Shown here piece by piece: positions 3,305 through 45,334 of a DNA stretch of 64,000 nt (its first letter is position 1; every line of letters starts with the position of its first letter). The stretch spans positions 45,756,001 through 45,820,000 of the forward strand of contig CM075979.1 in assembly GCA_038087875.1 (NCBI GenBank), in the 5' to 3' direction. The notes below the pieces were generated by a model that searched no databases, was not told where the DNA came from, and saw only the letters and a list, made by a program, of their open reading frames with translations. Position numbers and translations under genes: made by a program. This DNA is from Malacoraja senta. Taxonomy: Eukaryota.

Positions 3305-3379
<75 letters not shown>

Positions 3380-13677: not shown

Positions 13678-14016
13678 ATTCGTTGGATATGAACATTTTT
13701 GCCAGTCCGAAGAAAGTATTTTTGAACAAATCGGTTTTGTTGGAATGTAAATTTTCTGGGTTTAAAGCACCACTTGACCTTGACAAATGTAGGTGTGCGG
13801 TGGTTGTTCGGACCACACCAGGAAGAAATCTATGTTTTCAAACGGGAGTACCTACGCACAAGAACTCTAGCAAAGAAATAACCAACATTAAACTATCCGA
13901 AGGAGATGCTTCACTTCATCTTCATAATGTCCAATTGGAAAACGAAGGAATGTATACTTGCATTGTGTTTGTCACTCCTGAAAAGGCAGAAAAGAGTTCG
14001 GAACTGCGAGTTTTAG
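13678..14016 (+). CDS. NCR3LG1: Gene 1 exon: Ig V-set domain, B7-H6/NCR3LG1-like (apparent compensating +1/-1 frameshifts inside)
   Basis: tttag| acceptor at 13677, G|gtaaaa donor at 14017, phase 1/1. Reads (D)SLDMNIF..VLLECKFSG...GDASLHLHNVQLENEGMYTCIVFVTPEKA..LRVL. The GDASL..L..VQL...G.Y.C.V.VTP.KA pattern matches B7-H6 V domains. The C-strand VGVRW lies in the +1 frame. Confidence 0.8.
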
Positions 14017-14066
14017 GTAAAAGACCGTCAACATTACCTGGGGTGATCTGCACTGTTATTACTGGA

Positions 14067-16948
14067 GGTAGACAAATGTGCTGGAGAAAACTCAGTGGGT
14101 GCAGCAGCATCTATGGAGCGAAGGAAATAGGCAACGTTTCAGGCCGAAAACCTTTCTGCAGTGATGTAAGGTGGGGGGGGGGGGGGGGGGGGGCAGGGAG
14201 AAGAAAGGAGAAAGGAAGAGGAGGAGCCTGAGGGAGAGCTGAGAAGGGAAGGAAACAACAAGGGCTACTGGAAATTGGAGAAGTCAATGTTCATGCCACT
14301 AGGATGCAGACTACCCAAGTGGAATATGAGGTGCTGTTCCTCCAATTTCCGGTGGTGCTCACTCTGGCCATGGAGGAGGCCCAGGACAGAGAGGTCAGAT
14401 ACGGAATGGGAGGGGTAGTTGAAGTGCTGAGCCACAGGGAGATCAGGTTGGTTATTGCGGACCGAGCGGAAGTGTTCGGCAAAACGATCGCCAAGCCTAC
14501 GCTTGGTCTCACCGATGTAGATCAGCTGATATCTAGAGCAGCGGATGCAATAGATGAGGTTGGAGGAGGTGCAGGTGAACCTCTGTCGCACCTGGAACGA
14601 CTGCTTGGGTCTTTGAATGGAGTCGAGGGGGGAGGTAAAGCGACAAGTGTAGCATCTCTTGTGGGTGCAAGGGAAATTGCCAGGGGAGGGGGTGGTGCGG
14701 GAGGGAGGGAAGAATTGACCAGGGAGTTACGGAGGGAGCGGTCTTTGCGGAAAGCAAACGGGGAAGATGGGAAGATGTGGCGAGTGGTGGGGTCAAGTTG
14801 GAGGTGGCGAAAATGACGGAGGACTATTTGTTGTATGTGACGGCTAGTGGGGTGAAAGGTGAGGACTAGGGGGACTCTGCCCTTGTTGTGAGTGGGGGGG
14901 ATGGGGAGAGAGAGCAGTGTTATGGGGTATTGTAGAGACCCTAGTGAGAGCCTCATCTATAGTAGGGGAGGGGAACCCCTGAAGAATGAGGACATTTCAG
15001 ATGCCCTGGTGTGGAACACCTCATCCTGGGAGCAGATGCGGCGTAGACGGAGGAATTGGGAATAGGGGATGGAGTCCTTACAGGAAGCAGGGTGGAAAGA
15101 AGTGTAGTCTAGATAGCCATGGGAGTCAGTAGGTTTATAGTCGATGTCGGTCAGAAGTCTATCACCAGAGAACTGACTGTCCTGGTAGACCCATTGTCTC
15201 TGCCTGTTCGTGCCCCACCGAACTTATTTCCACATACCTCGACTCCATCCTATCCCCCTTGGTTAAATCCCTCCCTACCTATGTTGAAGACACCTCAGAC
15301 ACTCTCCGTCATCTCCGCGCATTCCATTCTCTAGCCACTCACCCCCTCATCTTCACCATGGACGTCCAGTCACTCTACACCTCCATCCCCCACCACGATG
15401 GTCTCAAAGCCTTCCGGTTCTTCCTCGACCAGAGAACCACCCTATACCCGGCCACTGATACTCTCCTCCGCCTAGCGGAGTTGGTCCTTACCCTCAATAG
15501 CTTCTCGTTTGACTCCTCCCATTTCCTCCAAATACAAGGCGTAACTATGGGCACACGCATGGACTCCAGCTATGCCTGCCTCTTTGTCGGGTATGTCGAA
15601 CAATCCTTGTTCGAGACGTACCCGGGCCCAATCCCCGTCCTCTACCTCCGCTACATCGACGATTGCATTGGTGCCACCTCCTGCACCCACACACAACTCA
15701 CTGACTTCATCCTCTTCACCACTAACTTCCATCTGGCACTCAAATACACCTGGACCATTTCCGACACTTCCCTACCATTTCTTGACCTCACTATCTCCAT
15801 CGCAGGTGATAGACTCCTTACCGACATCCACTATAAACCTACTGACTCCCATGGCTATCTGGACTACACTTCTTCCCACCCTGCTTCCTGTAAGGACTCT
15901 ATCCCCCACTCCCAATTCCTCCGTCTACGCCACATCTGCTCCCAGGATGAGGTGTTCCACACCAGGGCATCCGAAATGTTCTCATTCTTCAGGGAACGGG
16001 GGTTCCCCATCCCTACTATAAATGAGTCTCTCACTAGGATCTCTTCAATACCCCGTAACACTGCTCTCTCTCCCCATCCCCCCACTCACAACAAGGGCAG
16101 AGTCCCCCTGGTCCTCACCTTTCACCCCACTAGCCATCACATACAACAAATAGTCCTCCGTCATTTTCGCCACCTCTAACGTGACCCCACCACTCGCCAC
16201 ATCTTCCCATCCCCCCCTCCCGTCTGCTTTCCACAAAGACCGCTCCCTCCGTAACTTCCTGGTCAAATCTTCCCTTCCCTCCCGCACCACCCCCTCCCCG
16301 GGCACTTTCCCTTGCAACCGCAAGAAATTCTACACTTGTCGCTTTACCTCCCCCCTCGACTCCATTCAAGGACCCAAGCAGTCGTTCCAGGTGCGGCAGA
16401 GGTTCACCTGCACCTCCTCCAACCTCATCTATTGCATCCACTGCTCTAGATATTAGCTGATCTACATCGGTGAGACCAAGCGTAGGCTTGGCGATCGTTT
16501 CGCTGAACACCTCCGCTCGGTTCGCATTAACCAACCTGATCTCCCTGTGGCTCAGCACTTCAACTCCCCCTCCCATTCCGAATCTGACCTTTCTGTCCTG
16601 GGCCTCCTCCATGGCCAGAGTGAGCATCACCGGAAATTGGAGGAGCAGCACCTCATATTCCGCTTGGGCAGTCTGCACCCTAGCGGCATGAACATTGACT
16701 TCTCCAATTTCCGGTAGCCCTTGCTGTCTCCTCCCCTTCTCAGCTCTCCCTGAGCCCTCAGGCTCCTCCTCTTCCTTTCTCCTTTCTCCCCGCCCCCCCT
16801 CCCCCCACCCTACATCAGTCTGAAGAAGGGTTTCGGCTCGAAATGTTGCCTATTTCCTTCGCTCCATAGATGCTGCTGCACCCACTGAGTTTCTCCAGCA
16901 CTTTTGTCTACCTTTGACTTTCCAGCATCTGCAGTTCCTTCTTAAAAC
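14067..16948. mobile_element. Penelope-like element: inverted 3' copy (14067-about 15172, minus) joined to a longer plus-strand copy, 14-bp TSD
   Basis: RT (MDVQSLYTSIPH, YLRYIDD) and GIY-YIG (NLIYCI..YIGETKRRL..RF.EH) motifs. CTGTTATTACTGGA at 14053-14066 and 16949-16962. Confidence 0.9.
16820..16847 (+). ncRNA. Minimal hammerhead motif at the 3' end of the Penelope element
   Basis: CTGAAGA-A-GGGT(TTCG)GCTC-GAAAT-GTT, in the terminal repeat downstream of the GIY-YIG ORF. Confidence 0.55.
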
Positions 16949-16989
16949 CTGTTATTACTGGATCTTGGTGGTAAAATGGGTTTCACCAA

Positions 16990-17345
16990 TTGGCCTTCAA
17001 CGGCCAGCGTATTGAATATAGAAGTTTGAAGGTAATGTTGCAGTTATATAAGACGTTGGTGAGGCTGTATTTAGAGTATTGTGTTCAGTTCTGGGCACCA
17101 TGCTGTAAGAAAGATGTTGTCAAGCTGGAAAGGGTACAGAGAAGATTTACGAGGATGTTGCCAGGATTCGAGGGTCTGGGCTACAGGGAGAGGTTGAGCA
17201 GCCTGGGACTTTATTCTTGCGGCACAGGAGGATGAGGGGTGATCTTATGGAGGTGTATAAAGTTATGAGAGGAATAGATCGGGTAGACACACAGAGTCTC
17301 TTGCCCAGAGTAGGGCGATCGAGGACCAGAGGGCATATGATTTAA
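16990..17345 (+). mobile_element. CR1 3' fragment
   Basis: LQLYKTLVR..LEYCVQFW..ERVQRRFTRM. Confidence 0.8.
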
Positions 17346-17714
17346 GGTGAATTGGCCCTCTGTAAATCACCTCTAGTGTGTCGAGAGTGGATGAGAAAGA
17401 AAGGATAACAGAACTAGTGTGAACGGGTGATCGATGGTTGACGTGGATTTAATGGACGTAGGGCCGATTTCAATGCTGATTCTCAAATAAAATTGTAAAT
17501 GCAAAACTGTATAAAGAGTGACCACGTCAAAAGTATTTTAGTGTTCTCATTAATATATGCTACATATACTTAGCTGAATAATGTGGCAATCTAAATCTGC
17601 ATGTCGTCAAAGGCACTAAATTATAGGAAAGGAATGGTTGGCATGGACTCGATGGGCTGAAGGGCCTGTTTCCAAGCAGTATTAATCAATCAATCAAAAA
17701 TCAACATTAATTGA

Positions 17715-19323: not shown

Positions 19324-19644
19324 TTCAGCCGAAGCTGCATTTACCCACACAACATGTTACCATTGAGACTGGTGCGGAGAAGCTGGTGATGTGTGATGCT
19401 ACAGGATTTTACCCTCAGGCACATAACATCTACTGGGAAAAAGTATCCAAGGATAAGACTGAGAACCTAAGGCACGATGTCTTCATCACACCTCTAGTTC
19501 TTAATCCGGATAAAACCTTTAATGTCTCCAGTGGAATGAGAATTGAACCAACTCCAGATGATAATGGCAATGTGTACAAGTGTGTCGTGGAGCACCAATC
19601 ATATAATGACCCTCTCTCGCTCGAGTTGAAACTCACAGTCAAAG
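19324..19644 (+). CDS. NCR3LG1: Gene 1 exon: extracellular Ig C1-set domain, B7-H6-like
   Basis: cag| and G|gtatgt splice sites, phase 1/1. VQPKLHL..VMCDATGFYPQAHNIYWEK..NPDKTFNVSSGMRI..DDNGNVYKCVVEHQSY..LTVK has both Cys and the Trp. Resembles human B7-H6 C domain (C..SGFYP.AINITWEK..DGTFNVTS..VYQCVVRH). Confidence 0.85.
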
Positions 19645-21249: not shown

Positions 21250-24144
21250 TTCTAAAGTGCAGAAAAGATTAGTTTGCTTTAGTTTATTGTCACGTGTACC
21301 AAAGGGCAGTGAAAAGCTTTAGTTGTATGCTAACCAGTCAGCGGAAAGACTATACATGATTACAATTGATTCATTCACAGTGTACAGATCCATGACAAAG
21401 GGAATAACATTTATTGCAAGATAAAATCCCGTAAAGTCTGATTAAAGATAGTCCAAGGGTTTCCAGTGAGGTTGCCCGTTGCTCAGGACCGTTGTCTAAT
21501 TGTTGAGAGGATGATTCAGTTGCCTGATAACAAACTATACATGAATACAACCAAGCTGTCCACAGTGCTTGGATAAAGGGCACAACATTTAGTACAAACT
21601 TTGAAGTCCAATAAAGTCCGACTAAAGATTGTTTAAAGGTCTCCAATGAGGTAGATGGGAGGTCAGGACCACAATCTAGCTGACGAAACGGCCATTCAGT
21701 TGCCTGATAACAGCTGGGAAGAAACTGTCCCTGAATCTGGAGGTTTTTGCTTTTAAACTTCTGTATCTCTTGCCTGATGGTAGAGGGGAGAAGAGGGAGT
21801 GACCAGGGTGAGACCCTTGATTATGCTGGTGGCCTTGCCGAGGCAGCTTGAAGTGCAGATGGAGTCAGTGGAAGGGAGGTTAGCTTGCACGATGGTCTGC
21901 GCTGCGTACAACTGTAGAAGCTTGTGAGGGTTGTTTGGGACATACCGATCATCTGAGCCTTATAAGGAAGTAGAGGCATGGTGTGCTTTCTTGGCCTCAG
22001 CTTCAATGTGGCTGGTGCAAGACAAATTAATTTTGTTTTTATTCATAGGAACTTGGAGATATTTTACAGCGTACTTTATTAAAATGTTTCCAATAATATA
22101 TATGAAAATATTTGTGTGTGCTTAATACATATCCTTCACTGAGATGTGCAGTGCTTTAACTAGTGTTTATCCTTTGACCAAGATAAGAATGAGAGGATTT
22201 AAGATGAGAGGGAAAAGAGTTATTAGAAACTTGAGAATAACTTTTTCAGAAAGAGGTGGTGGGTATATGGAAGGAGCTGCCAGGGGAGGTATTTGAGGCA
22301 ACATTTAAAAGACATTTGGAGAGGTTAGAAGGATATGGGGTAAATAAGGACAGGTGTCAAAAGTCAAGTCAAGTCAAGAGAGTTTATTGTCATGTGTCCC
22401 AGATAGGACAATGAAATTCTTCCGTGTTTAATAGGCATATGTACCAAAAAAGGAACAATTAAATTCTTACTTAGATGGACTACTGTAGATGGGGCATCTT
22501 GGTCAGCATGGAGAAGTTGGGCTGAAGGGCCTATTTCCATGCTGTATGACTCACTTCCACCACAAGTAGATACAGTCTCAGCCATTGAGAATGAACATAA
22601 TCCTGGCACATTTGTGGTTTGGTGGGGAAGTTTGGTTCTGGTCTTTCATTGACTGCTTAGTAATTCATACAGATTTTTGTGGCCTGGCAGTGCAAGCTTT
22701 TGGGAGACCCTGATAGAAATATCTAACATAATTAGAGGCATTGATAGGTGTAGAAGTCAGAACCTTTTTCCCAGAGTGGAAATGTCAAAGACTGGAGGAC
22801 ATAGCTTCAAGGTGAACAGGGCAAAGATTAAAGAAGATGTGCAGAACAAGTTTTTTACACAGAGAGTGTCTGGAACACGCTGCCAGGGGTGGTGGTGGAG
22901 GCAGATTCCATAGTGGCATTAACTAGGCTTAATTCAACACATTGATATACAGGGAATGGATGGATATGGATGATATACAGGCAGATTAATTTAATTTGGC
23001 ATCATGTTTAGCATGGACATTGTGGGCCGAAGGGCCTGTTCCTGTGCTGTATTGTTCTAAATCTGTTCTTTCCACATGCCATTAAAATATAAAAATATTT
23101 CAGTTGCCTAGTTGCCATGAGTAATATTTTTTCATTTTTTTTCCCTTTCTATGTACATTAGCTTAATCTCTCCTTTCCAATATGCAGCAGCAGAATTTAC
23201 TTTATTGCCAGTTCGGATCTGCGTTGACCAGCGATCACCCCCCCCCCCCCCCACTATCCTACACATTATGGACAATTTACAATCTTACCAAAGCCAATTA
23301 AGTTACAAACCTGCACGTCTTGGATTGTGGGATGAAACCGGAGCACAGAGAGAAACCCACACAGGTCACAGGGAGAATGTACAAACTCCATACACACAGC
23401 ACGTAGTCACGATTGATCCCGGGTTTTTGGCGCTGTAAGGCTGCAACTCTACTGCTGCGCCACTATGCCGTATCTAAAACTAACTATTACACACCTCTCT
23501 TCTGTACGTGTGGGTGAGTCGAGTCAGAAATTGAGGTGTGAATAGCCCTCTAAACCCTTGAATTATTTCTGATTGCAGCAGAAATAATGGAATCACTAAT
23601 TGGAATTCCTAGGCCTTTAATTAAAGGGGGATATAAATTGCACAATTATGGTTTCAATGTTAATAACTGTCCCCCCCCTCCCCCTCCCATTTTCCTCCCC
23701 TTTACCACCCGCCCCTTCCACTAAAATTCCTCCCTCCATGTTACATTTCACTATCCCCTTCACTCCTTATCTGACATCTTTTGTCTCCTTATCACCTCTA
23801 GCCTTTTGTCCACCCATCCTCAAATCAGTAAAAATCCCTTCTCACCTATCACTTTGTCCAACCCCCATGTTCTTTCCATCTTTCCCCCACTACAATCAGA
23901 CTGAAGGAAGGTCCCGACCCGAAACGTCACCTATCCATGTTCTCCAGAGAAGCTGCTGAGTTACTCCAGCACTCTGTTCTACACAACATTTTGGCATCTG
24001 TAGTTCCTTGTGTCGCCTCTTTAAAATCCTGTCCACTTGTATTGTTTACTATTGGCAAAAATGAACGAGTCTGCAAATCAAGAAAGTTATTTCACGTACG
24101 TGGTTTTTGTGGATATGCCTGATTCTTAGTGTTTTACATTCCAG

Positions 24145-24258
24145 AACCTGTGGAATATTCGTCAACAGGGGCTATTGTTGGAGTTGGAGTTGCTGCAATT
24201 ATTCTATTGCCACTACTTGCCTTTGGACTCTATAAGTTCATCGTGAAATACAGACCAG
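24145..24258 (+). CDS. Gene 1 exon: stalk + transmembrane helix + basic stop-transfer
   Basis: ccag| and G|gtaata, phase 1/1. EPVEYSSTGAIVGVGVAAIILLPLLAFGLYKFIVKYRP: about 22 uncharged hydrophobic residues followed by K..K.R. Confidence 0.85.
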
Positions 24259-24815
24259 GTAATATGACAAATGGAGAACGTTCCTCAATGCGTTGTAATT
24301 GTCTGCCTCGAGTTATAGCAGCTACAGCACGGAAACAGGCCATTCAGCCCACCACATCCACGCGACCATCGGGCACTCGTATACATAAATATCATTTCAT
24401 TCAGCCCACTTTCCCATGAGCTCGTACCTGATCCTACCACATTCCTCACACACAAGCGGAAAGTTACAGGGCACAACTAACCTAACTTTTTGGGGTGCAG
24501 GAGGAAACCAAAACACTCCAACATGGGGAACGTGCAAACTCCACATAGACAACATATGAGGTTAGCATTGAACCCCGCCTGTGTGCTGTGTAAAGTACTG
24601 GAGTTGTGTGGCTTTTGTGATTCTTTGATTGCTTCTTGTTACATTTCCCCAACATGGAGGGCTGGTGATCTATTAGTTTCAACCACAGATGACCCTGTGA
24701 TGATTGTATACCCATATAGACAGGCAGCCAGGCTTGGAGCTTCTCTTTGAATGGCCTCCTGGGCATAACTTGTTTCAGTTATAATTTTAGAGATACAGTG
24801 TGGAAACAGGCCCTT

Positions 24816-25123: not shown

Positions 25124-27015
25124 CTCTCAGACACCTCCTCCTACTTATCCCTGGACCATGACCCCACCTACGAGCACTAGGCCACTATCTCTAGCACCAT
25201 CACTGACTCCATCAACTCCCGCTCCCTGCCCCCCCCACCCCCGAGCCTCCAACCTCATCGTTCCCCAGCCCCGCACGGCCCGATTTTACCTTCTCCCCAA
25301 AATCCACAAACCTGACTGTCCTGGTAGACCCATTGTCTCTGCCTGTTCCTGCCCTACTGAACTTATTTCCACATACCTCGACTCCATCCTATCCCCCTGG
25401 TTAAATCCCTCCCTACCTATGTTCAAGACACCTCAGACATTCTCCGTCATCTCCGCGCATTCCATTCTCTTGGCCCCCATCTTCACCATGGACGTCCAGT
25501 CACTCTACACCTCCATCCCCCACCAGGAGGGTCTCAAAGCCCTCCGGTTCTTCCTCGACCGGAAAACCAACCAATCCCCGTCCACTGATACTCTCCTCCA
25601 CCTGGTGGAGCTGGTCCTTACCCTTAATAACTCTTCGTTTGACTCCTCCCATTTCCTCCAAATACAAGGCGTAGCTATGGGCACGCGCATGGGCCCCAGC
25701 TACGCCTGCCTCTTTGAAGAATACGTTGAACAATCCTTGTTCGAGATGTATCAGGGCCCCATCCCCGACCTCTACTTCCGCTACATCGACGACTGTTTTG
25801 ATGCTACCTCCTGCACCCACACACAACTCACTAACTTCATCAACTTTGCCACTAACTTCCATCCGGCACTCAAATACACCTGGACCATTTCCGACACTTC
25901 CCTACCATTTCTTAACCTCAATATCTCCATCGCAGGTGATAGACTTTTGACCAACATCCAGTATAAACCCACTGACTCCCATGGCTATCTGGACCACACT
26001 TCTTCCCACCCTGCTTCCTGTAAGGACTCCATCCCCTATTCCCAATTCCTCCATCTATGCCGCATCTGCTCCCAGGATGAGGTGTTCCACACCAGGGCAT
26101 CGGAAATGTCCTCATTCTTCAGGGAACGGGGGTTCCCCTCCCCTACTATAGATGAGGCTCTCACCAGGGTCTCTTCAATACCCCGTAACACTGCTCTCTC
26201 TCCCCATCCCCCCCACTCGCAACAGGGGCAGAGTCCCCTAGTCCTCACCTTCCACCCCACTATCAATCAATCAATCAGTTTTATTCGTCACTTGCACATA
26301 AAGTGCTAGTGAAATGAATATTGCCAGCAGCATTATTACAATGAAAAAGAATACACAAAAATACAATAACAATTTAACACAAACATCCACCACAGCATTC
26401 ATCACTGGTGGAAGGCACAAAATTTGGCCAGTCCTCCTTCATTTCCCCCCGTGGTCGGGACCTCAACCCTCCGCAGCCGCCGCTGCGGGCATCCAGATGT
26501 GTAGACAAGGTAAAAGTCCAGGTAAGTCCTGAATCGGTGCTTCCCTTCAGGTTGGTGTAGGCCGCAGGCCGGCAGTCGAAGATTTAAAGTTCCCGCCGCG
26601 CTGCAGCCAGAAGCACCGCAGACCGCAGGGCCGGCGGTCGAAGCTCCCCTCCCTAAAGCCGTCACATACAACAAATAGCCCTCCGTCATTTTCGCCACCT
26701 CGAACGTGACCCCACCACTCGCCACATCTTCCCATCTCCCCCTCTGCTTTCCGCAAAGACCGCTCCCTCCATAACTCCTTGGTCAATTCTTCCCTTCCTA
26801 CCCGCACCACCCCCCACCCCGGGCACTTTCCCTTCTCCTCCCTTTCTCAGCTCTCCATCAGCCCTTGGGCTCCTCCTCTTCCTTTCTTCTTCCCGCCCCC
26901 TCGCCCCCCATCCTGCAACAGTCTGAAGAAGGGTTTCGGTCCGAAATGTTGCGTGTTTCCTTCGCTCCATAGATGCTGCCACACCCGCTGAGTTTCTCCA
27001 GCACTTTTGTCTACC
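25124..27015 (+). mobile_element. Penelope-like element RT fragment, interrupted at about 26270-26655 by an unrelated short repeat
   Basis: ORF 25158-26309: FYLLPKIHK..PGRPIVS, MDVQSLYTSIPH, YFRYIDD; terminal hammerhead motif at about 26923. Confidence 0.85.
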
Positions 27016-27060: not shown

Positions 27061-28312
27061 TAGAATTTTTCGAGGATGTAACTAGTAGAGTGGATAAGGG
27101 AGAACCAGTGGATGTGTTGTATCGACGTTCAGAAGGCTTTCGACAAGGTCCCACATAAGAGATTAGTATACAAACTTAAACCACACGGTATTGGGGGTTC
27201 ACTATTGATGTGGACAGAGAACTGGCTGGCAGACAGGAAGCAAAGAGTAGGAGTAAACGGGTCCTTTTCAGAATGGCAGGCAGTGACTAGTGGGGTACCG
27301 CAAGGCTCAGTGCTGGGACCCCAGCTATTTACAATATATATTAATGATTTGGACGAGGGAATTGAATGCAACATCTCCAGGTTTGCGGATGACACGAAGC
27401 TGGGGGGCAGTGTTAGCTGTGAGGAGGATGCTAGGAGGCTGCAAGGTGACTTGGATAGGCTGGGTGAGTGGGCAAATGCATGGCAGATGCAGTATAATGT
27501 GGATAAATGTGAGGTTATCCACTTTGGTGGCAAAAACAGGAACGCAGACTATTATCTAAATGGTGGCCGATTAGGAAAAGGGGAGATGCAACGAGACCTG
27601 GGTGTCATGGTACACCAGTCATTGAAAGTAGGCATGCAGGTGCAGCAGGCAGTGAAGAAAGCGAATGGTATGTTAGCATTCATAGCAAAAAGATTTGAGT
27701 ATAGGAGCAGGGAGGTTCTACTGCAGTTGTACAGGGTCTTGGTGAGACCACACCTGGAGTATTGCGTACAGTTTTGGTCTCCTAATCTAAGGAAAGACAT
27801 TCTTGCCATAGAGGGAGTACAGAGAAGGTTCACCAGACTGATTCCTGGGATGGCAGGACTTTCATATGAAGAAAGACTGGATAGACTCGGCTTGTACTCG
27901 CTAGAATTTAGAAGATTGAGGGGGGATCTTATAGAAACTTACAAAATTCTTAAGGGGTTGGACAGGCTAGATGCAGGAAGATTGTTCCCGATGTTGGGGA
28001 AGTCCAGAACAAGGGGTCACAGTTTAAGGATAAGGGGGAAGTCTTTTAGGACCGAGGTGAGAAAAAAAAAATTCACACAGAGAGTGGTGAATCTCTGGAA
28101 TCCTCTGCCACAGAAGGTATTTGAGGACAGTTCATTGGCTATATTTAAGAGGGAGTTAGATGTGGCCCTTGTGGCTAAAGGGATCAGGGAGTATGGAGAG
28201 AAGGCAGGCACGGGATACTGAGTTGGATGATCAGCCATGATCATATTTAATGGTGGTGCAGGCTCGAAGGGCCGAATGGCCTACTCCTGCACCTATTTTC
28301 TATGTTTCTATG
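27061..28312 (+). mobile_element. CR1 RT/3' end
   Basis: ORF 27112-28221 with SGVPQGSVLGP and FADDTKL; (TTTCTATG) tail. Confidence 0.9.
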
Positions 28313-28463: not shown

Positions 28464-28892
28464 TTCGTCCAGAGATCACTGGCCCCAATGGACATCAAAC
28501 CATGAAACATCATGAAAAAGAAATGGCCACTTGGACGGTTGGTCCATTCCGACCTCGTGAAATTATAATTCACTTATACCTAAAGAGGAAGGGGGATGAT
28601 GTGAGAAGTACAATTTTAGATTGGGACAGCAGAAAATCTACTGAAAACAGAAATGGAATGATCAACGGAGAGGGTCGCAATGAGTCGAGGATTCTGATGA
28701 ATTCAAATTGGGTCGATGCATCTTTTACACCATTGGATCCCGAATATAACAATGCAGATGGGATTGTGACGATCAATGTGAAAATATATCCAGATGTTAA
28801 CAAGGATGCAGGGGCTGAATTAACCATTGAAGTTCAACATACATCACTGAAACAGCCGATATCAAAGACATTGATACTGGATGTTATAGGAG
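28464..28892 (+). CDS. Gene 1 exon: first post-TM C1-set-like domain, cysteine-free, with long insertion
   Basis: tag| and G|gtaaag, phase 1/1, 143 open codons. VRPEITGP..ATWTVGPFRPREIII.. and ..DAGAELTIEVQHTSLKQPISKTL.LDV align to the C1 motifs xCxxxGFYPxxI and YxCxVxHxSL. Confidence 0.75.
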
Positions 28893-30880: not shown

Positions 30881-31258
30881 TGCCACCCAAGGTTTTAAAC
30901 ATCTTCAAACCCTCTTGCATCATTCACAATGAACCTGCATCTTTGTTCTGTTCAATCACTGGGTTTAAACCGAGACCTTTATGTATCACGTGGCAACGAA
31001 AGAGAAAGAACATGGAGGCAGAAGAAATAGTTCGAATGGAGGAGGACAACAGGACAATTATTCCCGGTGGTGACGGGGAGATGTCCACATATAAACATTA
31101 CATCATTGAGATGAAGCACGATGATGAATCCTACAGCATCACTAGTGTACTAGAGATAGTGCCTGATATACAGCAAGATCAAGGCTCACTTTACACCTGT
31201 AAAGTACATCACAACGGCACCAATGACCAGGAGAGAGAAATCAAGTTAATGATTGCAG
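30881..31258 (+). CDS. Gene 1 exon: second post-TM C1-set domain
   Basis: caaag| and G|gtatat, phase 1/1. VPPKV..LFCSITGFKPRPLCITW..DDESYSITSVLEI..DQGSLYTCKVHH. Confidence 0.85.
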
Positions 31259-32160
31259 GTATATAATACTTCCATCTAAGCCTTGCATTGACAGAGGATG
31301 CAGAGTACGTACTTATTTGGAATGGTGTCTTAAATATCATACCACAACCATTAATGTACGCAGAGCGTTTGAAGGCTCTGGGTCTGTGCTAGCTGGAGTT
31401 TAGAAGGATGAGGGGGGGATCTCAATGAAACCTACTGAATAATGAAAGGCCTGGATAGACTGGATGTAGAAAAGATGTTTCTACTAATGTGAGAGTCCAG
31501 GACCAGACTCAGAGTAAAAGGAAGTACCTTTAGAATGGAGATGAGGAGGAATTCCTTTCGTCAGAGGTTGGTGACTCGGTGGAATTCATTGCTACAGACA
31601 GCTGTGGAAGCCAAGTCATTGGGTTTTTCACAGCGGAGATTTATAGGTTGTTGATTAATAATAGTGTGAAAGGTTATGGGGAGAAGGCAGGAGAATGGGG
31701 TTGAGAGGGAAAAATAGATCAACTATGATTGAATGGCAGAGTTGAGTCGATGGGCTGAATGGCCTAATACTGCCTTCTACACTGCCTTTTACAAGGGGAA
31801 TAATTTTGAATGGTTTTGAAAAAAATACAATAATAGGATACAATTGTTTTGGGATTAATGAAGTCATTCATTTTTCAAAAATTATATGTGTCTTTTTCAT
31901 AGTTTTCAAAAACATGGGTGATTGCATTTCTGGCCATTGATCATGGAAAGGCCACACATCTAATCCTTAGTTTTGTGAATCTGCTTGTGTTTGAATATAG
32001 AAACAAGGAACTGCAGATGCTGGTTTATACCAAAGATAGACACAATGTGCTGGAGTAACTCAGCGGGTCAGGCAGCATCTCTGGAGAACAGGATGGGTGA
32101 CGTTTTGGGTCGGGGCACTGCTATCTTGGCTTGTGTTTGAAGCCTTGTTTTTTATTTCAG

Positions 32161-32472
32161 CCATTCCAAAAGTGGGCCCAATAAAGTGCAACGCAGAGAA
32201 GATAATTGGTGGTGTACCCATGACGATAAGCTGTCCAATAAATGCGTTTTACCCCAGAGACATCACAGTGAAATGGCTGAAAAATGATGAAGAGACGTTG
32301 CAGAATTTCAAAGTTGCTGAGCCAGTAATTGGTCAGGATGGCCTCTATCATGTGGCAAGTGATGTGGAGATAGTCCCCACCAGGGCTGAGGCAACAGCCA
32401 AATATACATGCCGAGTGTCCCATCTGAGCCTGACTGAGCCATTACACACTGATTGGTTTGCAGGTGAAATGG
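32161..32472 (+). CDS. Gene 1 exon: third post-TM C1-set domain
   Basis: tttcag| acceptor; donor G|gtacgt at 32473 (alternative G|gtgaaa at 32464), phase 1/1. AIPKVGPI..ISCPINAFYPRDITVKW..DGLYHVAS..KYTCRVSHLSL. Confidence 0.85.
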
Positions 32473-33437: not shown

Positions 33438-33932
33438 NNNNNNNNNNNNNNNNNNNNNNNNNNNNNNNNNNNNNNNNNNNNNNNNNNNNNNNNNNNNNNN
33501 NNNNNNNNNNNNNNNNNNNNNNNNNNNNNNNNNNNNNNNNNNNNNNNNNNNNNNNNNNNNNNNNNNNNNNNNNNNNNNNNNNNNNNNNNNNNNNNNNNNN
33601 NNNNNNNNNNNNNNNNNNNNNNNNNNNNNNNNNNNNNNNNNNNNNNNNNNNNNNNNNNNNNNNNNNNNNNNNNNNNNNNNNNNNNNNNNNNNNNNNNNNN
33701 NNNNNNNNNNNNNNNNNNNNNNNNNNNNNNNNNNNNNNNNNNNNNNNNNNNNNNNNNNNNNNNNNNNNNNNNNNNNNNNNNNNNNNNNNNNNNNNNNNNN
33801 NNNNNNNNNNNNNNNNNNNNNNNNNNNNNNNNNNNNNNNNNNNNNNNNNNNNNNNNNNNNNNNNNNNNNNNNNNNNNNNNNNNNNNNNNNNNNNNNNNNN
33901 NNNNNNNNNNNNNNNNNNNNNNNNNNNNNNNN
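33438..33932. other. Assembly gap (495 N) inside a gene 1 intron
   Basis: Run of N. Confidence 0.99.
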
Positions 33933-36062: not shown

Positions 36063-36222
36063 CGTTTTGTAGTACAAAACCGATAGAAAAAGACCCTGAT
36101 GGTTCCTCAGAACTTTCAATGTTTCATCCCTTATTTTCTCAATTTGTTGTTAATATTTCTCTGAATTCTAGTGTTCTTTAAATTACACGTTCAGATTAAC
36201 CTTTTTTTCCCCTTTTCTCCAG

Positions 36223-36555
36223 CTTCATTGCCAAAGCTTACAGCAATTGAGGTTGATCCACTTTGCCCCGAAATGGGAAAGGAAGTAACACTCTCCTGCA
36301 AAGCTTACGGATTCTATCCTGAAGGAAATCAAATATCCTGGTTCAAAGAATTTGATAAAATCAAAGATCCATTCAAAGCAGGAATTACTCTGGGAGCAAG
36401 TGAACTGGACACAGAGAATGGTTGCTATTCACGTTCATCCAAATGGAAATACACACCAGCTGCTGATGACCATGGAAGAAAATTTAAGATGAAAATCTTT
36501 CATTCTGCAACTTCAAGCTACCCCAACACTTCCAGTTACACTTTAAAATTAAAAG
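36223..36555 (+). CDS. Gene 1 exon: fourth post-TM C1-set domain (F-strand Cys replaced by Met)
   Basis: Long pyrimidine tract + ccag|, G|gtgaat, phase 1/1. ASLPKL..VTLSCKAYGFYPEGNQISW..ENGCYSRSS..DDHGRKFKMKIFHSA. Confidence 0.85.
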
Positions 36556-38132: not shown

Positions 38133-38444
38133 GGATTCCATTCGTCGACGACATTAAGTATGAGCCACCAGTGGCTGCGTACAGTTCAGAACATCATCTC
38201 GTCTGCAAAGTTGATAACTTTTATCCAAAACAAATTGGAACAAGCTGGTTATGTAAAGGGAAACCAATATCCGAAGGAGTCGAAGATGCAGGAGCGGTGG
38301 AGGATAAGAATGGATGTTTTCAGATGGAGTCCTCCTTGCGTATTAAGCCAACTGCTGTACAATTTGATGGAATGATTTCCTTTCAAGTGACGCATTCAAG
38401 GTTAAATACTCCAATAACAAAACAAGTGTCTTTAAACCTTTCAG
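38133..38444 (+). CDS. Gene 1 exon: fifth post-TM C1-set domain (F-strand Cys replaced by Phe)
   Basis: caacag| and G|gtatgt, phase 1/1. GIPFVDDI..LVCKVDNFYPKQIGTSW..KNGCFQMESSLRI..ISFQVTHSRL..PITKQV. Confidence 0.85.
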
Positions 38445-39257: not shown

Positions 39258-39554
39258 TTTTGCCTCCTACCTTATCTCCTATCACAAGTGATCCAGCTCC
39301 ACGGCTACTGAAAGTGAAGCAAGCTGTTAATCTCTGTGTCTCCTTGACATCCTATGTTCCTGCTCAAATCCAAGTCAAGTGGCTTCTAGATGGGAAGCTT
39401 TGCCAAGCAAGGTGTGAATGCCCTCCTGAGATCACAGATGATGGTTTGTTTTCATCTAGTTTGAGCATAATGTTGGAGGCAGGAATAAATGATCACAGAA
39501 GTTGCATCAAATGTCCGGTGCTTCATGTGAAGGAATTCCAATTACTCTCTGAAG
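39258..39554 (+). CDS. Gene 1 exon: sixth post-TM, divergent Cys-rich C1-like domain
   Basis: catcag| and G|gtgaat, phase 1/1. VLPPTLSPI..NLCVSLTSYVPAQIQVKW..DDGLFSSSLSI..IKCPVLH. Confidence 0.7.
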
Positions 39555-39669
39555 GTGAATCTTACTCTATAGTGTTATGTTCAGCATGACATTTCATTAA
39601 AGTTAGAACTGCAATGTTGATGTTAGTGTAGAGATACAGCATGGAAACAAGCCCTTCGGCCCACCGAGT

Positions 39670-42600
39670 TATCTCCAGTTTGCTTCCAGTTCCTCGTGTT
39701 GGCGAAAGCAGGAACAGGGAGATACGGTACTTGTGCACTGGGGAACTGGTGCAGGGGGCAGGGATTTAGATTCTTAAATCACTGGGATCTGTTTTGGAGT
39801 AAGGGGGAACTGTACAAAAGGGACGGATTGCATCTTAACAGGTGAGGGACCAGCATTCTGGCAGGCAGGATTGCCACTGCTACACGGGTGGTTTTAAACT
39901 GAATAAGAGGGGTGGGGTGTCAAATGGGATAGTCGAGGACGGAGTTAAAGGGAAAGAGAGTAAAGGGATGGTTAATGACCTCAGAATTAATGGGAAAGGA
40001 AGCTCACAAAGGGATAGGAGAGTATGGCCAAGTGTAATAGGGATCGATGTGAAAGGTGAGATGCGTAAGGAATTAAAAGTATTGTATATGAATGCGCGAA
40101 GTATAAGAAGTAAAGTACATGAGCTTGAGGCTCAGTTAGAGGTTGGTAGATATGACATTGTGGGGATTACTGAGACGTGGCTGCAGGAGGATCGGGCCTG
40201 GGAACTTAATATTCAGGGTTATACATCCTATAGAAAGGACAGGCAGGTGGACAGAGGAGGGGGGGTAGCTCTGCTGGTGAGGGATGGAATTCAGTCCCTT
40301 GCGAGTGAAGACATAGGGACTGACGAGGTAGAGTCACTGTGGATTGAGTTGAGGAATTGTAAAGGCAAGAAGACACTAATTGGTGTTATCTACAGACCCC
40401 CAAATAGTAGCCCGGATGTAGGGTGTAAGTTGCAGCAGGAGTTAAAACTGGCATGTAACGAAGGTAATGCCACTGTGGTGATGGGGGATTTCAATATGCA
40501 GGTAGACTGGGAAAATCAGGTTGGTTCAGGATCCCAAGAAAGAGAGTTTGTAGAATGCCTCCAAGATGGATTCTTAGAGCAGCTTGTAATGGAGCCGACC
40601 AGAGAAAAGACAATTCTGGATTTAGTGTTGTCCAATGAACCAGATATGATAAGAGAACTCGAGGTAAAGGAACCGCTTGGAGGTAGTGATCATAATATGA
40701 TTAGTTTTAATCTGCAATTTGAGAAGGAGAAAGTTAAATCGGAAGTGTTAGTGATGCAGTTGAACAAAGGGGACTATGAAGGCATGAGAGGGGAGCTGGC
40801 CAAGGTAGACTGGAAAGGGATCCTAGCAGGAATGACAGTGGAACAGCAATGGCAGGAATTTCTGGGCATAATCCGGAAGACGCAGGATCATTTCATTCCA
40901 AAAAGGAAGAAAGATTCTAAGGGGAGTAGGAGGCAACCGTGGCTGACAAGAGAAGTTAGGGATAGAATAAAACTAAAAGAAAAGATGCATAACACAGCAA
41001 AGAGTAGCCGGAAGCCAGAGGATTGGGAAACTTTCATAGGACAGCAGAAGGAAACAAAACGGGCAATATGGGCTGTAAAGATGAAGTACGAGGGGAAGCT
41101 GGCCAGGAATATAAAGAAGGACAGTAAAAGCTTCTTTAAATATGTTAAGGGAAAAAGAGTAGCAAAGTCAAATGTGGGTCCCTTGAAGGCAGACACGGGT
41201 GAAATTATTATGGGCAACAAGGAAATGGCAGAAGAGTTGAATAGGTACTTCGGATTTGTCTTCACTAAGGAAAACACAAGCAATCTCCCAGATGTACTGG
41301 AGGACAGAGGATCTAAGGGTGTAGAGGAACTGAAAGACATTTTCATTAGGCGAGAAATAGTATTGGGTAGGCTAATGGGACTGAAGGATGATAAATCCCC
41401 TGGGCCTGATGGTCTGCATCCCAGGGTCCTCAGGGAGGTGGCTCTAGAAATAGTGGACGCATTGGTGATCATTTTCCAATGTTCAATAGATTCAGGATCA
41501 GTTCCTGTGGATTGGAGGATAGCTAATGTTATCCCACTTTTCAAGAAAGGAGCGAGAGAGAAAACGGGGAATTACAGACCAGTTAGCCTGACTTTGGTGG
41601 TGGGAAATGCTGGAGTCAATTATTAAAGAGGTAATAATGGGGCATTTGGATAGCAGAAAAAGGATTAGTCAACATGGATTTATGAAAGGGAAATCATGCT
41701 TGCCTAATCTTCTGGAATTTTTTGAGGATGTGACAAGTAAAATGGATGAAGGGGTGCCAGTGTATGTAGTGTATCTAGACTTTCAGAAGGCCTTTGATAA
41801 GGTCCTGCACGGGAGACTGGTGACTAAAATTAGAGCACATGGTATTGGGGGTAGGTTGTTGACATGGATAGAAAATTGGTTGGCAGCAAAGAGTAGGAGT
41901 GAACGGGTCCTTTACAGAATGGCAGGCAGTGGCGAGTGGAGTGCCGCAAGGCTCGGTGTTGGGGCCGCGCAACTGTTTACCATATATATTAATGATTTGG
42001 AAGAGGGAATTAGGAGCAACACTAGCAAGTTTGCGGATTACACAAAGCTGGGTGGCAGTGTGAACTGTGAAGAGGATGTTGGGAGGTTGCAGGGTGACCT
42101 GGACAGGTTGAGTGAGTGGGCAGATGCGTGGCAGATGCAGTATAATATAGATAAATGTGAGGTTATCCACTTTGGCAGCAAAAACAAGGGGGCAGATTAT
42201 AATGGGGTTAGGTTAGGTAAGGGGGAGGTGCAGCGAGACCTGGGCGTCCTTGTACACTGGTCACTGAAAGCTGGCTTACAGGTACAGCAGGCAGTGAAGA
42301 AAGCTAATGGAATGTTGGCCTTCATAACAAGAGGATTTCAGTATAGGAGTAAAGAGGTTCTTCTGCAGTTGTATAGGGCTCTGATGAGACCACATCTGGA
42401 GTATTGTGTACAGTTTTGGTCTCCTAATTTGAGGAAGGACATCCTTGTGATTGAGGCAGTGCAGCGTAGGTTCACGAGATTGATCCCTGGAATGGCGGGA
42501 CTGTCATATTGAAAAGACTAGACTTGTATTCACTGGAGTTTAGAAGGATGAACATAGAAACATATAAAATTATAAAAGGACTGGACAAGCTTTTTTTTTT

Positions 42601-43475
42601 TTAAATATTTTTATTTTATTAGAAGTAAGTACAATTGTATACAATCATATTTTCATAATACCTTTTATGTACAGCTTCTTATTTAAATTTTTTTTTGAAA
42701 TAAAGAAGAAAAAGAAAAAAGTTAGATAATGAAAAATAGAAAAATGTGAGATGTATAGTGTGTGAAAAAGAAAAATAAAGAATGAAAAAAGAAAGTTGAG
42801 ACATAGAAAATAGAAGAAAGAGAATAAAAGAAGAGAAGAGAAGAAAAGAAAATAGAAGGAGATCATTTATAATCTTGACCATCCGCAGTCACGGATTAGC
42901 TTTTACACCTGTTTTGCACCATATGTTTCCAAAAAGACGACAAATGGAGACCAACTCGTTATGAATTGGTCAAATTTATCTATTAGGAGGAATCGCATTT
43001 CCTCAAGATGTGCGGTATCCAACATACTTGCAATCCACATTTTGAGCGTTGGTATTGGTGTATTTTTCCAAAATTTCAATATTAATTTTTTTGCTATTAT
43101 TAAACCATAATTAAAAATTATGGACTGGACAAGCTAGATGCAGGAAAAATGTTCCCAATGTTAGGCGAGTCCAGAACCAGGGGCCACAGTCTTAGAATAA
43201 AGGGGAGGTCATTTAAGAATGAGGTGAGAAAAAACGTTTTCACCCAGAGAGTTGTGAATTTATGGAATTCCCTGCCACAGAGGGCAGTGGAGGCCAAATC
43301 ACTGGATGGATTTAAGAGATAGTTAGATAGAGCTCTAGGGGCTAGTGGAATCAAGGGATATGGGGAGAAGGCAGGCACGGGTTACTGATTGGGGACGATC
43401 AGCTATGATCACAATGAATGGCGGTGCTGGCTCGAAGGGCCGAATGGCCTCCTGCACCTATTCTCTATGTTTCTC
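39670..43475 (+). mobile_element. Long CR1 (end of ORF1 + ORF2), interrupted by an L1 fragment
   Basis: ORFs 39842-41626 (APE) and 41607-42512 (RT); 3' tail at about 43460. Confidence 0.9.
42591..43121 (-). mobile_element. 5'-truncated L1-clade LINE 3' end with poly(A) and 13-bp TSD
   Basis: GGACTGGACAAGC at 42578-42590 and 43122-43134; poly(T) at 42591. Minus strand reads IAKKLILKFWK..PTLKMW..EEMRF..FITSWSPF, as in L1 ORF2 C-termini. Confidence 0.8.
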
Positions 43476-45289
43476 TGACACACTAGGGGGCAATTCCCAG
43501 AGGGCCAATTAACTAACAAACCCACAAATGTACAAGATTCGGACACATACGATTCTTTTATTTATAAATATTGTTTATGACACTTGATAAATATTCTTGT
43601 TTTGTTGCTTTTGTTTTTTGTATGCTGTTTCACACTTGCTTTTTATATTTTTAATCTGTTCGAATAATAAAAAATAAAAAATAAATAAATCTTGAGAGGA
43701 ATAGATCGGGTTGTCGCATAGCGTCTCTTGCCCCGAGTTGGGGAATCGAGGACCAGAGGCCAATGGTTTAAGGTGAGGGGGATTTAATAGGAACTCGAGG
43801 GGTAACTTTCTCACACAAACGTTGCAATCAGAGGTAGTTGAGGCAGGGACTATTGCAACGTATAAGAAACATTTAAACAGGTATTTGGATAGGATAGGTT
43901 TAGAGGGGTATGGGGTAAATGCAGGCAGGTGGGTCTAGTGTAGATGCGGCATGCTGGTCGGAGTGGACATGTTGGGACAAAGGGCCTGTTTCCACACTGT
44001 ATGACTACGACTCTTTGTCTTTGGGATCTAGGAAGAAACCCGCACGTTCACATGGGGGAACGTGCAAACGCCACACAGACAGCACCCGTGGTCAGGATTG
44101 AACCTGGGTCTCTGGCGCTGCGCCACTGTGCCGTCCCTTCTCACTTCAAACTTTCCATTAGATTTATTTGATTGTCTCTTTCACAACAAAGTTTCACGTT
44201 GAACAAATTAGTTTTATTTTTTACTGGTGTTGTGAATAGATGATTTTGGATGTTCATTTGTTTAAAATCTGCTTGGGTGAGACACTTAGATCACTGAAGC
44301 AGGCCCTTCGGCCCAACTTGCCATTGTCAACCAAGGTGCCCAATCTGAACTAGTCCCACCTGCCCGCGATTGGCCCACCTTCTATCAATCTAGACTATTA
44401 CTAAAACTCTCATCTTGACCACTTCCTGTCTGCGTTGTATTAAATTTGCGCAAAAACGATCCCCCATAGCGCTACGTTTTTTCGCCACCTTATCATTCTC
44501 CTTTGCTGCGTCATATAAGTTTTGTCCCGATCGGTGAAATATTAGAAAACTTATTGGTCTGTTATTCGCCAGGACGGCGACGCCCCTTCCGGCACCCGCT
44601 GTCAATCACCGGCCGCGACAATAAAGCTGAAGGAGCGGAGTGAGCAAAGTGTGAACGGGGTCTTTGTTCTGCGAGTGGGGGCCCACACCCCCCCTCCCCT
44701 ACAGCCCGCCCCTCCCCTGCACCCCTCCTCCCCCCCTCCCCTACACCCCCCTCCCCCCTACCACACACGCCCATCACACACATACCCCCTGCTCCCACCA
44801 TCCCCCCTACCCCCACCTTCCCCCCTCACCCCACCCCCATAAGGTTGGAGGAGGTGCAGGGGAACCTCTGCCTGAGCTGGAAAGACTGCTTGGGTCCTTG
44901 GATGGGGTCGAGGGGGGAGGTAAAGCGACATGTGTAGCATTTCCTGCGGTTGCAAGGGAAAGTACCAGAGGAAGGGGGTGATTTGGGTAGGAAGGGACGA
45001 ATTGAACAGGGAATTGGTTCAGGTAGTCTTTGCTTTCGCCCTCCTTCCCCTCCCCTTCACAGCTCTCCCACAGCCTACTCTCTCCGCCTCTTCCTTTCTT
45101 TTTCCCACCCACCACCCCCCCACATGTGTGAAGAAGGGTCTCGACCCGAAACGTCCCCTATTCCTTCGCTCCATAGATGCTGCCTCACCCGCTGAGTTTC
45201 TCCAGCATTTTTGTCTACCTTTGATTTTTCCAGCATCTGCAGTTCCTTCTTAAACATCAGGTTTAATTAAGCTCTTTTTTATTCTGCAG

Positions 45290-45334
45290 ATAATGGCAAA
45301 ATGGAAAATGATGTCAATGAAGACGTCGATGAAG
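45290..45334 (+). CDS. Gene 1 candidate 45-nt acidic mini-exon
   Basis: T-rich tract + ctgcag|, G|gtaaaa, phase 1/1. DNGKMENDVNEDVDE lies in non-repeat sequence between repeats. Confidence 0.55.

Follow-up and report, generated by a model that had tools for sequence, protein, structure and literature searches.

The locus described here, which lies in a 64,000-nucleotide stretch of the genome of the skate Malacoraja senta (the window), raises the question of whether a relative of the natural cytotoxicity ligand B7-H6 can carry a long series of immunoglobulin (Ig) domains behind its transmembrane (TM) segment and, if so, on which side of the membrane these domains lie. The first-pass annotation had proposed ten exons, and re-examination confirmed that all of them are located on the + strand, have AG/GT borders, are of phase 1, have lengths divisible by three and are free of stop codons. 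The proposed order of V, C1, TM, six Ig exons and an acidic mini-exon also stands, while the assignment of all six post-TM domains to the C1-set does not, since the first of them (E4) is only C1-like. The total length, previously given as 2880 nt, is corrected to 2886 nt, or 2871 nt if an inner acceptor of the TM exon is used, with E9 being 6 nt longer than was implied.

The ectodomain is encoded by a V-set exon of phase 1 (E1, 13678-14016; Pfam V-set E 1.8e-08), which is 52-57% identical by tblastn to the V domains of the homologue models P0001 and P0080, and by a C1-set exon (E2, 19324-19644; Pfam C1-set E 8e-11). The TM exon (E3, 24145-24258, with an alternative acceptor at 24130) encodes a 19-residue stretch of hydropathy 2.66, behind which K..KYR stands; its counterparts in P0001 and P0080 align with it and start EPVE.SS, and the homologues favor the inner acceptor at 24145. 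The TM exon is followed directly by E4 (28464-28892), a cysteine-free Ig-like domain recognized through its phmmer relatives, AF2 modeling and hhalign. Two C1-set exons with canonical Cys-Trp-Cys come next (E5, 30881-31258, E 2.1e-12, 47.6 bits; E6, 32161-32463, E 3.5e-16, 59.7 bits), and then three C1-set exons with altered cysteines: E7 (36223-36555, 25.0 bits), with the F-strand Cys replaced by Met, E8 (38133-38444, E 1e-12, 48.7 bits), with the F-strand Cys replaced by Phe, and E9 (39258-39554, 22.9 bits), which is without the B-strand Cys and has a weak acceptor tract. The gathering cutoff of Pfam C1-set (PF07654), 21 bits, is passed by E2 and E5-E9. E9 is missing from the models P0001 and P0080 and matches residues 885-987 of P0002 and 897-1002 of P0081. 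The last exon, E10 (45290-45334), is an acidic 15-residue cassette exon matching the repeated DYGKKENDVNEDADE-type units of P0001 and P0080; whole units of this kind differ between isoforms of relatives. An assembly gap (33438-33932) lies within the E6/E7 intron; no reading frame crosses it and the flanking exons are colinear with homologues, and since E6-like and E7-like domains are directly adjacent in five homologous proteins (e.g., P0001, residues 787-898 and 897-1008), no exon is expected there.

Regarding the fold of E4, Pfam gave no match for this domain; its AF2 model (pLDDT 85.6) is a beta sandwich in which residues 61-77, an insert of ~17 residues, are disordered, hhalign against C1 exons returned probabilities of 91 and 83%, and Foldseek matches were Ig V-type and MyBP-C domains. 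E4 is accordingly predicted to have diverged from the C1 fold while remaining C1-like, its insert being disordered. The seven post-TM domains of the family have pLDDT values of about 85-93, with disorder restricted to the E4 insert and the acidic linker, and an orthologous E6 domain matches Ig CH, MHC-I alpha3, beta-2-microglobulin and HLA-DM.

The suggestion that the V and C1 exons form a B7-H6-like pair was borne out, as both the window C1 exon and the ectodomain of a ray orthologue match human B7-H6 structures first. Among solved structures, the C1 exon matched human B7-H6 (3pv6/4zso/6yjp) with E 1e-16, the next match having 2e-11, and the V-C1 region of the ray orthologue matched B7-H6 with E 3.5e-31 and CD276 with 1e-25. 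Human B7-H6 (NCR3LG1), the NKp30 ligand, is likewise a type I protein with a V-set and C1-set ectodomain; it has, however, a Gag-related cytoplasmic tail with short motifs, whereas the post-TM exons of the skate gene are Ig-like and accompanied by an acidic linker. The Gag-related tail is a feature of human B7-H6 and may not define the family. Judged from sequence and structure matches, the ectodomain is closest to that of human B7-H6 among characterized relatives, and its likeness to an NKp30 ligand is predicted.

The order V-C1-TM-(Ig)n, the conservation of which the first-pass annotation had proposed to test, recurs in uncharacterized RefSeq models of other chondrichthyans and of amphibians. 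These models, from chimaera, sharks, rays, bichirs, coelacanth, frogs and a salamander, share a signal peptide, V, C1, TM and seven Ig-like domains with an acidic linker. Family members were found in the cartilaginous genera Amblyraja, Leucoraja, Rhinoraja, Narcine, Hemitrygon, Pristis, Mobula, Heptranchias, Heterodontus, Cetorhinus, Pristiophorus and Callorhinchus and, in the bony lineages, in Erpetoichthys, Polypterus, Latimeria, frogs and Pleurodeles, and some are automatically annotated as NCR3LG1 or NR3L1. A phmmer search with E4 returned 49 relatives in which the E4 domain follows a TM, the latter at residues 230-330. Conservation of the post-TM domains equals or exceeds that of the ectodomain (identity to the chimaera sequence is 44% for E5 and 36% for V). 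The support consists mostly of automatic gene models. From these, the family is ancient, multi-copy and related to B7-H6, and its age reaches back at least to the divergence of cartilaginous and bony fishes; the Ig-domain tail appears to be lacking in amniotes and teleosts. Short transcript-derived fragments were searched for and none matched this gene, and no paper describing the V-C1-TM-(Ig)n architecture was found in the literature.

The skate copy itself shows several signs of damage or of incomplete assembly. A stretch of ~19 codons in the V exon (about 13782-13838, + strand) is out of register through two compensating indels, in an A run and a T run: frame 0 reads NVGVRWLFGPHQEEIYVF, as in homologues, and the literal exon frame reads DKCRCAVVVRTTPGRNLC. 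Both Cys are present in the literal frame; because of the frame slip, the V-domain Trp, invariant in nine of nine relatives and intact in the shifted frame, is lost from it. A leader exon was not found in the 13.6 kb scanned upstream of the V exon, nor were the two or three further acidic mini-exons and the terminal, stop-bearing Ig-like exon of the homologues detected in the readable sequence of the window, and the skate gene model is consequently without start or stop. With this frame slip and these absent exons, the skate copy may be non-functional or mis-assembled. That it is a paralogue already decaying or dead, within a birth-and-death cluster and at an unexpressed locus, is a real possibility that we hold to be somewhat less probable than its opposite; besides the scrambled codons and absent exons, it would explain the weak acceptor tract at E9 and the lack, among the protein-search matches, of an annotated protein of exactly this locus. 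Against this, ten exons totalling about 2.9 kb are stop-free with retained splice sites, the encoded products share 78-91% identity with paralogues or orthologues that look expressed, both V-exon indels fall in homopolymer runs, as is typical of assembly error, and the absent exons may sit in the gaps at 46535-46734 or 53589-53817. A dead skate copy would in any case be compatible with the explanation of the family developed below.

Regarding topology, the earlier proposal of a type I protein with a cytosolic Ig array is supported as a prediction, although not its number of six domains, as full-length relatives have seven. In V, C1, E5 and E6, the two canonical Cys never vary (with Cys, Trp and Cys of E5 and E6 present in 19 of 19 relatives); in E4, E7, E9 and the terminal domain, the pair is impossible in every sequence. 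In E4, both Cys are absent in the skate, the F-strand Cys is absent in every relative and the Trp position is L, I, F or V in 18 of 19; the F-strand position of E7 is M, V, I or L in all 19 relatives; only 2 of 18 relatives have an F-strand Cys in E8; the B-strand position of E9 is never Cys; and the terminal Ig-like domain of relatives is without the F-strand Cys. In all lineages, the canonical disulfide has been lost in five of seven post-TM domains, the two E8 sequences being the exceptions, while both ectodomains keep theirs. Sequons occur at 1.48 times the expected number in the ectodomain (59 observed, 39.9 expected) and at 1.10 times in the post-TM region (79 and 72.1), a modest contrast; a single N-glycosylation motif is deeply conserved, that of the ectodomain C1 (E2; 8 of 10 sequences), and no sequon is conserved across the ~700-800 post-TM residues. 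In every member the TM is followed by basic residues (K/R). The relatives terminate in an Ig domain, and a C-terminal TM is absent from all members; most members have a single TM, and those of ranid frogs have three ahead of the E4-type domain, again an odd number. Because disulfide loss, chance-level sequons, basic post-TM residues and odd TM counts agree, the array is predicted to lie on the cytosolic side, and the signs fit a reducing, non-glycosylating compartment. The perfect Cys-Trp-Cys of E5 and E6 would also suit an oxidizing compartment.

Alternatively, the array could work extracellularly, the functional product being a TM-skipped, secreted V-C1-(Ig)n protein, antibody-like and innate, comparable to UrIg2, with TM-including transcripts ending early or carrying the array as a mere by-product. 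Isoforms that skip the TM exon are annotated in two species, with the loss of exactly 38 residues in Hemitrygon and of 31 in Heterodontus, and in these the whole array would be secreted; skipping keeps the frame because all exons are of phase 1. If the donor at 24258 is unused, the frame stays open for 54 more codons before the stop at 24419, so that a form with a short tail would result, and the retained disulfide residues of E5 and E6 also point this way. Elasmobranchs moreover have multi-C1 secreted or membrane proteins such as UrIg2, which provide a precedent (PMC12227049). We nevertheless consider an extracellular array unlikely. The TM exon with its basic stop-transfer flank is conserved in almost every member and, contrary to the possibility of constant skipping that the initial proposal left room for, it is retained in six of seven Hemitrygon and at least four of five Heterodontus isoforms. 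V9K7L7, a separately sourced protein entry from the elephant shark differing from the RefSeq genome model in 8 residues, has signal peptide, TM and array in one protein. The loss of possible disulfides from five of seven domains, with a lone Cys kept, is unusual for secreted C1 domains, the post-TM residues have no conserved sequons, and the three-TM frog forms leave the domain on the same predicted side.

The cytosolic reading also presupposes that TM and array belong to one gene, and here the earlier claims of no leader-like exon in the TM/E4 intron and no second TM both withstood scrutiny: a dedicated scan of the intron for ATG-started leader-like exons was empty, and a hydropathy scan of all + frames from 13.6 to 61.8 kb gave only one convincing TM. 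The Callorhinchus (elephant shark) gene has the exon order of the skate and occupies 13.7 kb in all, and its TM-to-array intron is only 583 bp long with stops in every frame. In all members, a juxtamembrane motif, K/R-(V/A)-P-P-K-(I/V)-T, joins the TM directly to E4. Although the skate TM-to-E4 intron, 4.2 kb long, is packed with LINE fragments, the end of the skate gene is unread, and Gnomon models can fuse neighbors (V-C1 is present twice in the Amblyraja and Leucoraja models), it is highly improbable that a short B7-H6-like V-C1-TM gene is followed by a separate multi-C1 gene with a leader of its own or a TM that escaped notice, given the scans, which include no further TM before the next gene, the same exon order in more than 20 species, the short chimaera intron, the motif and the coverage of both parts by V9K7L7. 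The ten skate exons form, as far as can be read from sequence, one gene.

Several known systems resemble parts of this architecture. Butyrophilins likewise combine a V-C ectodomain of B7 type and a single TM with a folded domain in the cytosol, through which, by analogy, intracellular state could be coupled to ectodomain display; their membership was rejected, as no post-TM exon has a PRY/SPRY (B30.2) match by Pfam and the tail consists of C1-type Ig domains. Extracellular-type modules also form long cytosolic scaffolds in the FN3 array of integrin beta-4 and the Ig domains of titin and MyBP-C, and the top structural neighbor of the predicted array is the titin I-band Ig chain; those proteins, however, use FN3 or I-set domains, whereas the skate-family tail uses the C1-set. 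To our knowledge, C1-set domains are otherwise known from Ig, TCR, MHC, beta-2-microglobulin, tapasin, SIRP and B7-H6 ectodomains. UrIg2, which is among the sequence and fold matches of the family, and Ig heavy chains also place many C1 domains in series behind a V domain and have acidic stretches; in these, the TM follows the last C domain and all domains have disulfides, while in the skate family it follows the second domain and most later domains are without a disulfide. A UrIg2-type V-(C1)n identity was rejected on the position of the sole TM, between the second and third Ig exons. IGSF1 is cleaved at a linker and has a second, C-terminal TM, so that its Ig loops are all luminal. An IGSF1-like identity was rejected because the skate gene has no second hydrophobic segment and no relative has a C-terminal TM. 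The likeness that remains is that, in IGSF1, Ig domains lie downstream of an internal hydrophobic segment (PMC6552037), as in the skate family.

Taken together, the window probably holds one copy of an ancient B7-H6-related family encoding a type I protein with a cytosolic Ig-array tail. The conserved plan of the family's genes opens with a leader, V and C1; behind a single TM exon come one C1-like domain of derived type and five C1-set domains, and the 3' end is made up of acidic cassette exons of 15 residues and a last, Ig-like exon. The predicted protein would combine a small, NKp30-ligand-like ectodomain with a cytosolic tail of ~700-850 residues containing seven folded Ig-like domains. 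The tail could serve as a partner-binding scaffold, allowing the ligand to report cell state or receive signals; this role is suggested by likeness to integrin beta-4, which uses FN3 modules, and butyrophilins, which use B30.2, and a signaling function of the tail is likewise suggested by analogy. Skipping of the symmetric TM exon may yield a minor secreted form. The chances seem evenly balanced that the ancestral B7-H6-type ligand of jawed vertebrates had a seven-Ig cytosolic array binding intracellular partners, with TM-skipping exporting a soluble array. Because RefSeq already lists these proteins, under the title "uncharacterized protein," work on expression constructs and antibodies could start immediately.

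If the array is indeed cytosolic, C1-set domains, a hallmark of adaptive-immunity ectodomains, would be used inside the cell, where they would either link cell state to recognition by NK or T cells or let the ligand signal inward. The C1-set is treated as a marker of the extracellular machinery of adaptive immunity, and a conserved family with five to seven of them on the far side of a stop-transfer helix would be an exception to this rule. The NKp30/B7-H6 axis of early vertebrates would thereby gain an intracellular arm, raising the question of its replacement in mammals.

All ten exons claimed for the skate gene in the first-pass annotation were found on the + strand, each with AG/GT borders, in phase 1, with a length divisible by three and free of stop codons. 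The V exon (E1, 13678-14016) encodes a Pfam V-set domain, and C1-set domains above the Pfam gathering score are encoded by the ectodomain C1 exon (E2, 19324-19644) and by five exons behind the transmembrane (TM) exon, namely E5 (30881-31258), E6 (32161-32463), E7 (36223-36555), E8 (38133-38444) and E9 (39258-39554). The TM exon itself lies at 24130-24258, with an inner acceptor at 24145 that corresponds to its start in homologs, the first post-TM Ig exon, E4 (28464-28892), has no Pfam match, and an acidic mini-exon (E10) is present at 45290-45334. From the V exon up to the next gene, a hydropathy scan of all + frames picked out a single convincing hydrophobic helix, and a scan for ATG-started, leader-like exons detected none in the TM/E4 intron or in 1-13677; the first-pass annotation had likewise seen neither a leader nor a second TM exon from the TM exon to the last Ig exon. 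A hydrophobic stretch at 32109, just 5' of E6, was rejected as a TM helix or leader, having no ATG and being a translated pyrimidine tract. If the donor of the TM exon were left unused, the frame would stay open for 54 codons (24259-24419) to a stop, giving a V-C1-TM product of the conventional, short-tailed kind.

Regarding domain folds, human B7-H6 structures were the top match both of the C1 exon in the window (E 1e-16; next match 2e-11) and of the V-C1 region of the Narcine ortholog (E 3.5e-31; B7-H3 at 1e-25). Non-mammalian B7H6 is said to have been defined by Flajnik et al. in 2012. The post-TM region of the Narcine ortholog matches Ig heavy-chain constant domains, MHC class I alpha-3, beta-2-microglobulin and HLA-DM beta-2 (E 1e-16 to 1e-12) and is assigned by its sequence to the classical C1-set. 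AlphaFold2, run with a 19-sequence alignment, gave seven separate beta-sandwich domains behind the TM helix (pLDDT about 85-93) with disorder confined to an insert in E4 and the acidic linker, and the structural neighbors of this array model were multi-Ig chains, e.g., titin I65-I70, the IgM and IgE heavy chains and UrIg2. Modeled alone, E4 reached a pLDDT of 85.6 with residues 61-77 disordered; its family profile aligned to C1 exons of the window at 91% and 83% probability, among solved structures it lies closest in fold to V-type Ig domains and to a domain of MyBP-C, and an atlas search returned Ig-like features and nothing further. The earlier description of the array as six C1 domains thus holds for the five exons recognized by Pfam and only approximately for E4, which aligns to C1 at the profile level. 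In full-length relatives there are also two to four more acidic cassette exons, each of 15 residues, and a terminal exon for an Ig-like domain.

With E4 as the query, a full phmmer scan detected 49 proteins, nearly all of which are long gene models with an E4-like domain after the TM helix, at about residue 230-330, under the name "uncharacterized protein" or the automatic names NCR3LG1/NR3L1. Two weak matches were rejected, P0048 as unrelated and bacterial and P0034 as an environmental/Logan sequence in which the family likeness is absent, and multi-C1 proteins of the frogs Bombina, Discoglossus and Pelodytes, which match only in part, were left out of the member count. The family is present in skates and rays (Amblyraja, Leucoraja, Rhinoraja, Narcine, Hemitrygon, Hypanus, Pristis, Mobula), sharks (Heptranchias, Heterodontus, Cetorhinus, Pristiophorus), the chimaera Callorhinchus, bichirs (Erpetoichthys, Polypterus), the coelacanth Latimeria, many frogs including Xenopus laevis, and the salamander Pleurodeles. 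The order V-C1-TM-Ig array recurs in cartilaginous fishes, bichirs, coelacanth, frogs and salamander; the family is evidently old. The closest relatives, Amblyraja LOC116984368 and Leucoraja LOC129705966, share 78-91% identity over E4-E8, so that the window locus is either their paralog or their ortholog in a different skate. The Amblyraja and Leucoraja models P0001 and P0080 have V-C1 twice before the TM helix, a 4-Ig form like that of B7-H3, and lack a domain of the E9 type; in Amblyraja the gene covers 115 kb, and these double V-C1 models could represent true 4-Ig genes or fused neighboring genes.

It is possible, if on balance doubtful, that the copy in the window is defective. At 13782-13838 (about 19 codons) the literal frame of the V exon reads DKCRCAVVVRTTPGRNLC, while the shifted frame reads NVGVRWLFGPHQEEIYVF and matches all relatives; the literal frame is therefore out of register here and the invariant V-domain Trp is lost, the exon still being open. 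The 13.6 kb 5' of the V exon yielded no leader exon, neither a terminal exon nor a stop could be located up to the next gene, and the terminal Ig exon and the extra acidic exons were absent by permissive tblastn with four homolog C-termini and all family proteins examined. Against decay, the two compensating indels of the V exon lie in homopolymers, one in an A run and one in a T run, which makes assembly error an alternative to early decay, and the terminal exon could be hidden in the downstream gaps at 46535-46734 and 53589-53817. None of the protein search matches is an annotated product of the locus.

The window is vertebrate DNA with many LINE fragments and three N runs. The N run at 33438-33932 lies in the E6/E7 intron, 975 nt 3' of the E6 donor and 2290 nt 5' of the E7 acceptor; since E6-like and E7-like domains adjoin directly in the homologous models P0001, P0080, P0081, P0002 and P0004, no exon is expected within it and no frame crosses it, and the exon order on either side is colinear with that of relatives. 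The E9/E10 intron contains, in sense orientation, a near full-length LINE ORF2 (39842-42512; endonuclease and reverse transcriptase, in two ORFs), and more reverse transcriptase fragments were detected at 15259-16179, 25158-26309 and 27112-28221. The next B7-H6-like gene, in tandem, begins inside the window with a leader-like exon (60084-60159) that reads MPCSGDLWPALFPGLIAVLALLGAA followed by gtaagg, a V exon (61831-62190) with 61% identity to the Heterodontus family member P0024, and a C1 exon at about 63515-63854. Just 3' of this leader-like exon, a minisatellite (60249-60789; 38/76-nt unit, about 4-8 copies, 85-90% match) yields long spurious His/Thr-rich ORFs.

Regarding its membrane side, the array is predicted to be cytosolic, as five independent sequence features agree. 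K/R is found right behind the TM helix in every member and acidic residues precede the helix, a charge distribution that follows the positive-inside rule for a type I protein, and a conserved motif, K/R-(V/A)-P-P-(K/E)-(I/V)-T, joins the TM helix to E4. All 19 relatives compared have the canonical Cys-Trp-Cys in both E5 and E6, and 10 full-length sequences keep it in the V and C1 ectodomains; a canonical Cys pair is impossible in E4, E7, E9 and the terminal domain of every sequence, and in E8 of all but 2 of 18. The B-strand position of E4 is W/C/V/F and its F-strand position is never Cys, E7 has a B-strand Cys (19/19) and M/V/I/L on the F-strand (19/19), E8 has the B-strand Cys in 16 of 18 sequences and the F-strand Cys in only 2 of 18, E9 has the F-strand Cys and never that of the B-strand, and in the terminal domain the B-strand Cys is present in most sequences (11/15) and the F-strand Cys in none. 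A reducing compartment would suit both the lone buried Cys and the ancient, lineage-wide disulfide loss. The ectodomain has an excess of N-x-S/T motifs (59 observed, 39.9 expected), behind the TM helix their number is at chance level (79 observed, 72.1 expected), and the sole such motif shared between classes belongs to the ectodomain C1 (8/10). The ranid frog members P0023, P0047 and P0028 (Aquarana, Lithobates and Rana) have V-C1, three TM helices, in a Skint-like topology, and one or two E4-like domains; three being an odd number, their E4-like domain falls on the same predicted side. The cytosolic array suggested in the first pass is in line with the TM flank charges, the disulfide loss, the sequon counts and the odd TM number, and with a fifth feature, the conservation of the post-TM domains.

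RefSeq isoforms from which exactly the TM exon is skipped are present in Hemitrygon (X6, P0054, 38 residues missing) and Heterodontus (X3, P0071, 31 missing), one of them auto-named hemicentin-1-like; given a signal peptide, their predicted products would leave the cell as proteins built wholly of Ig domains. They are rated as a real minor product or splicing noise, and it is unlikely that the secreted protein is the main functional form. The Callorhinchus gene is compact (13.7 kb), with leader, V, C1, TM, E4, E5, E6, E7, E9 and terminal Ig exons (an E8 match was not recovered from the DNA examined), canonical splice sites at the TM exon and a 583-bp TM/E4 intron that is closed by stops in all frames. 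The Callorhinchus UniProt entry V9K7L7 combines a signal peptide, the TM helix and the complete array; eight of its residues are unlike those of the RefSeq model and the first 28 residues of that model are absent, pointing to a separate sequence source. UniProt entries of the V9K series are presumably derived from the elephant-shark transcriptome. Given this gene structure and V9K7L7, it is very unlikely that the TM exon and the array belong to two genes. A word-indexed protein search with E4 for transcript fragments (length window 78-248 aa) matched nothing.

The gene models are public, yet uncharacterized, and Ig domains behind the TM helix of B7-H6-like genes are undescribed in the literature searched, outside which PMC3709836 and PMC4594805 may mention them. 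No catalytic or known signaling domain was detected. When this skate is compared with chimaera, E5 is 44%, E7 48% and V 36% identical; conservation of the post-TM domains equals or exceeds that of the ectodomain, and this conservation at the protein level suggests that the tail is under selection. The protein would combine an NKp30-ligand-type V-C1 ectodomain with a tail forming a rod of folded Ig domains, in which a flexible acidic linker, whose length differs via cassette exons, would precede the last domain. On the most economical reading, this tail would be a partner-recruiting cytosolic scaffold, comparable to the integrin beta-4 FN3 tail and to the B30.2 domain found in butyrophilins.
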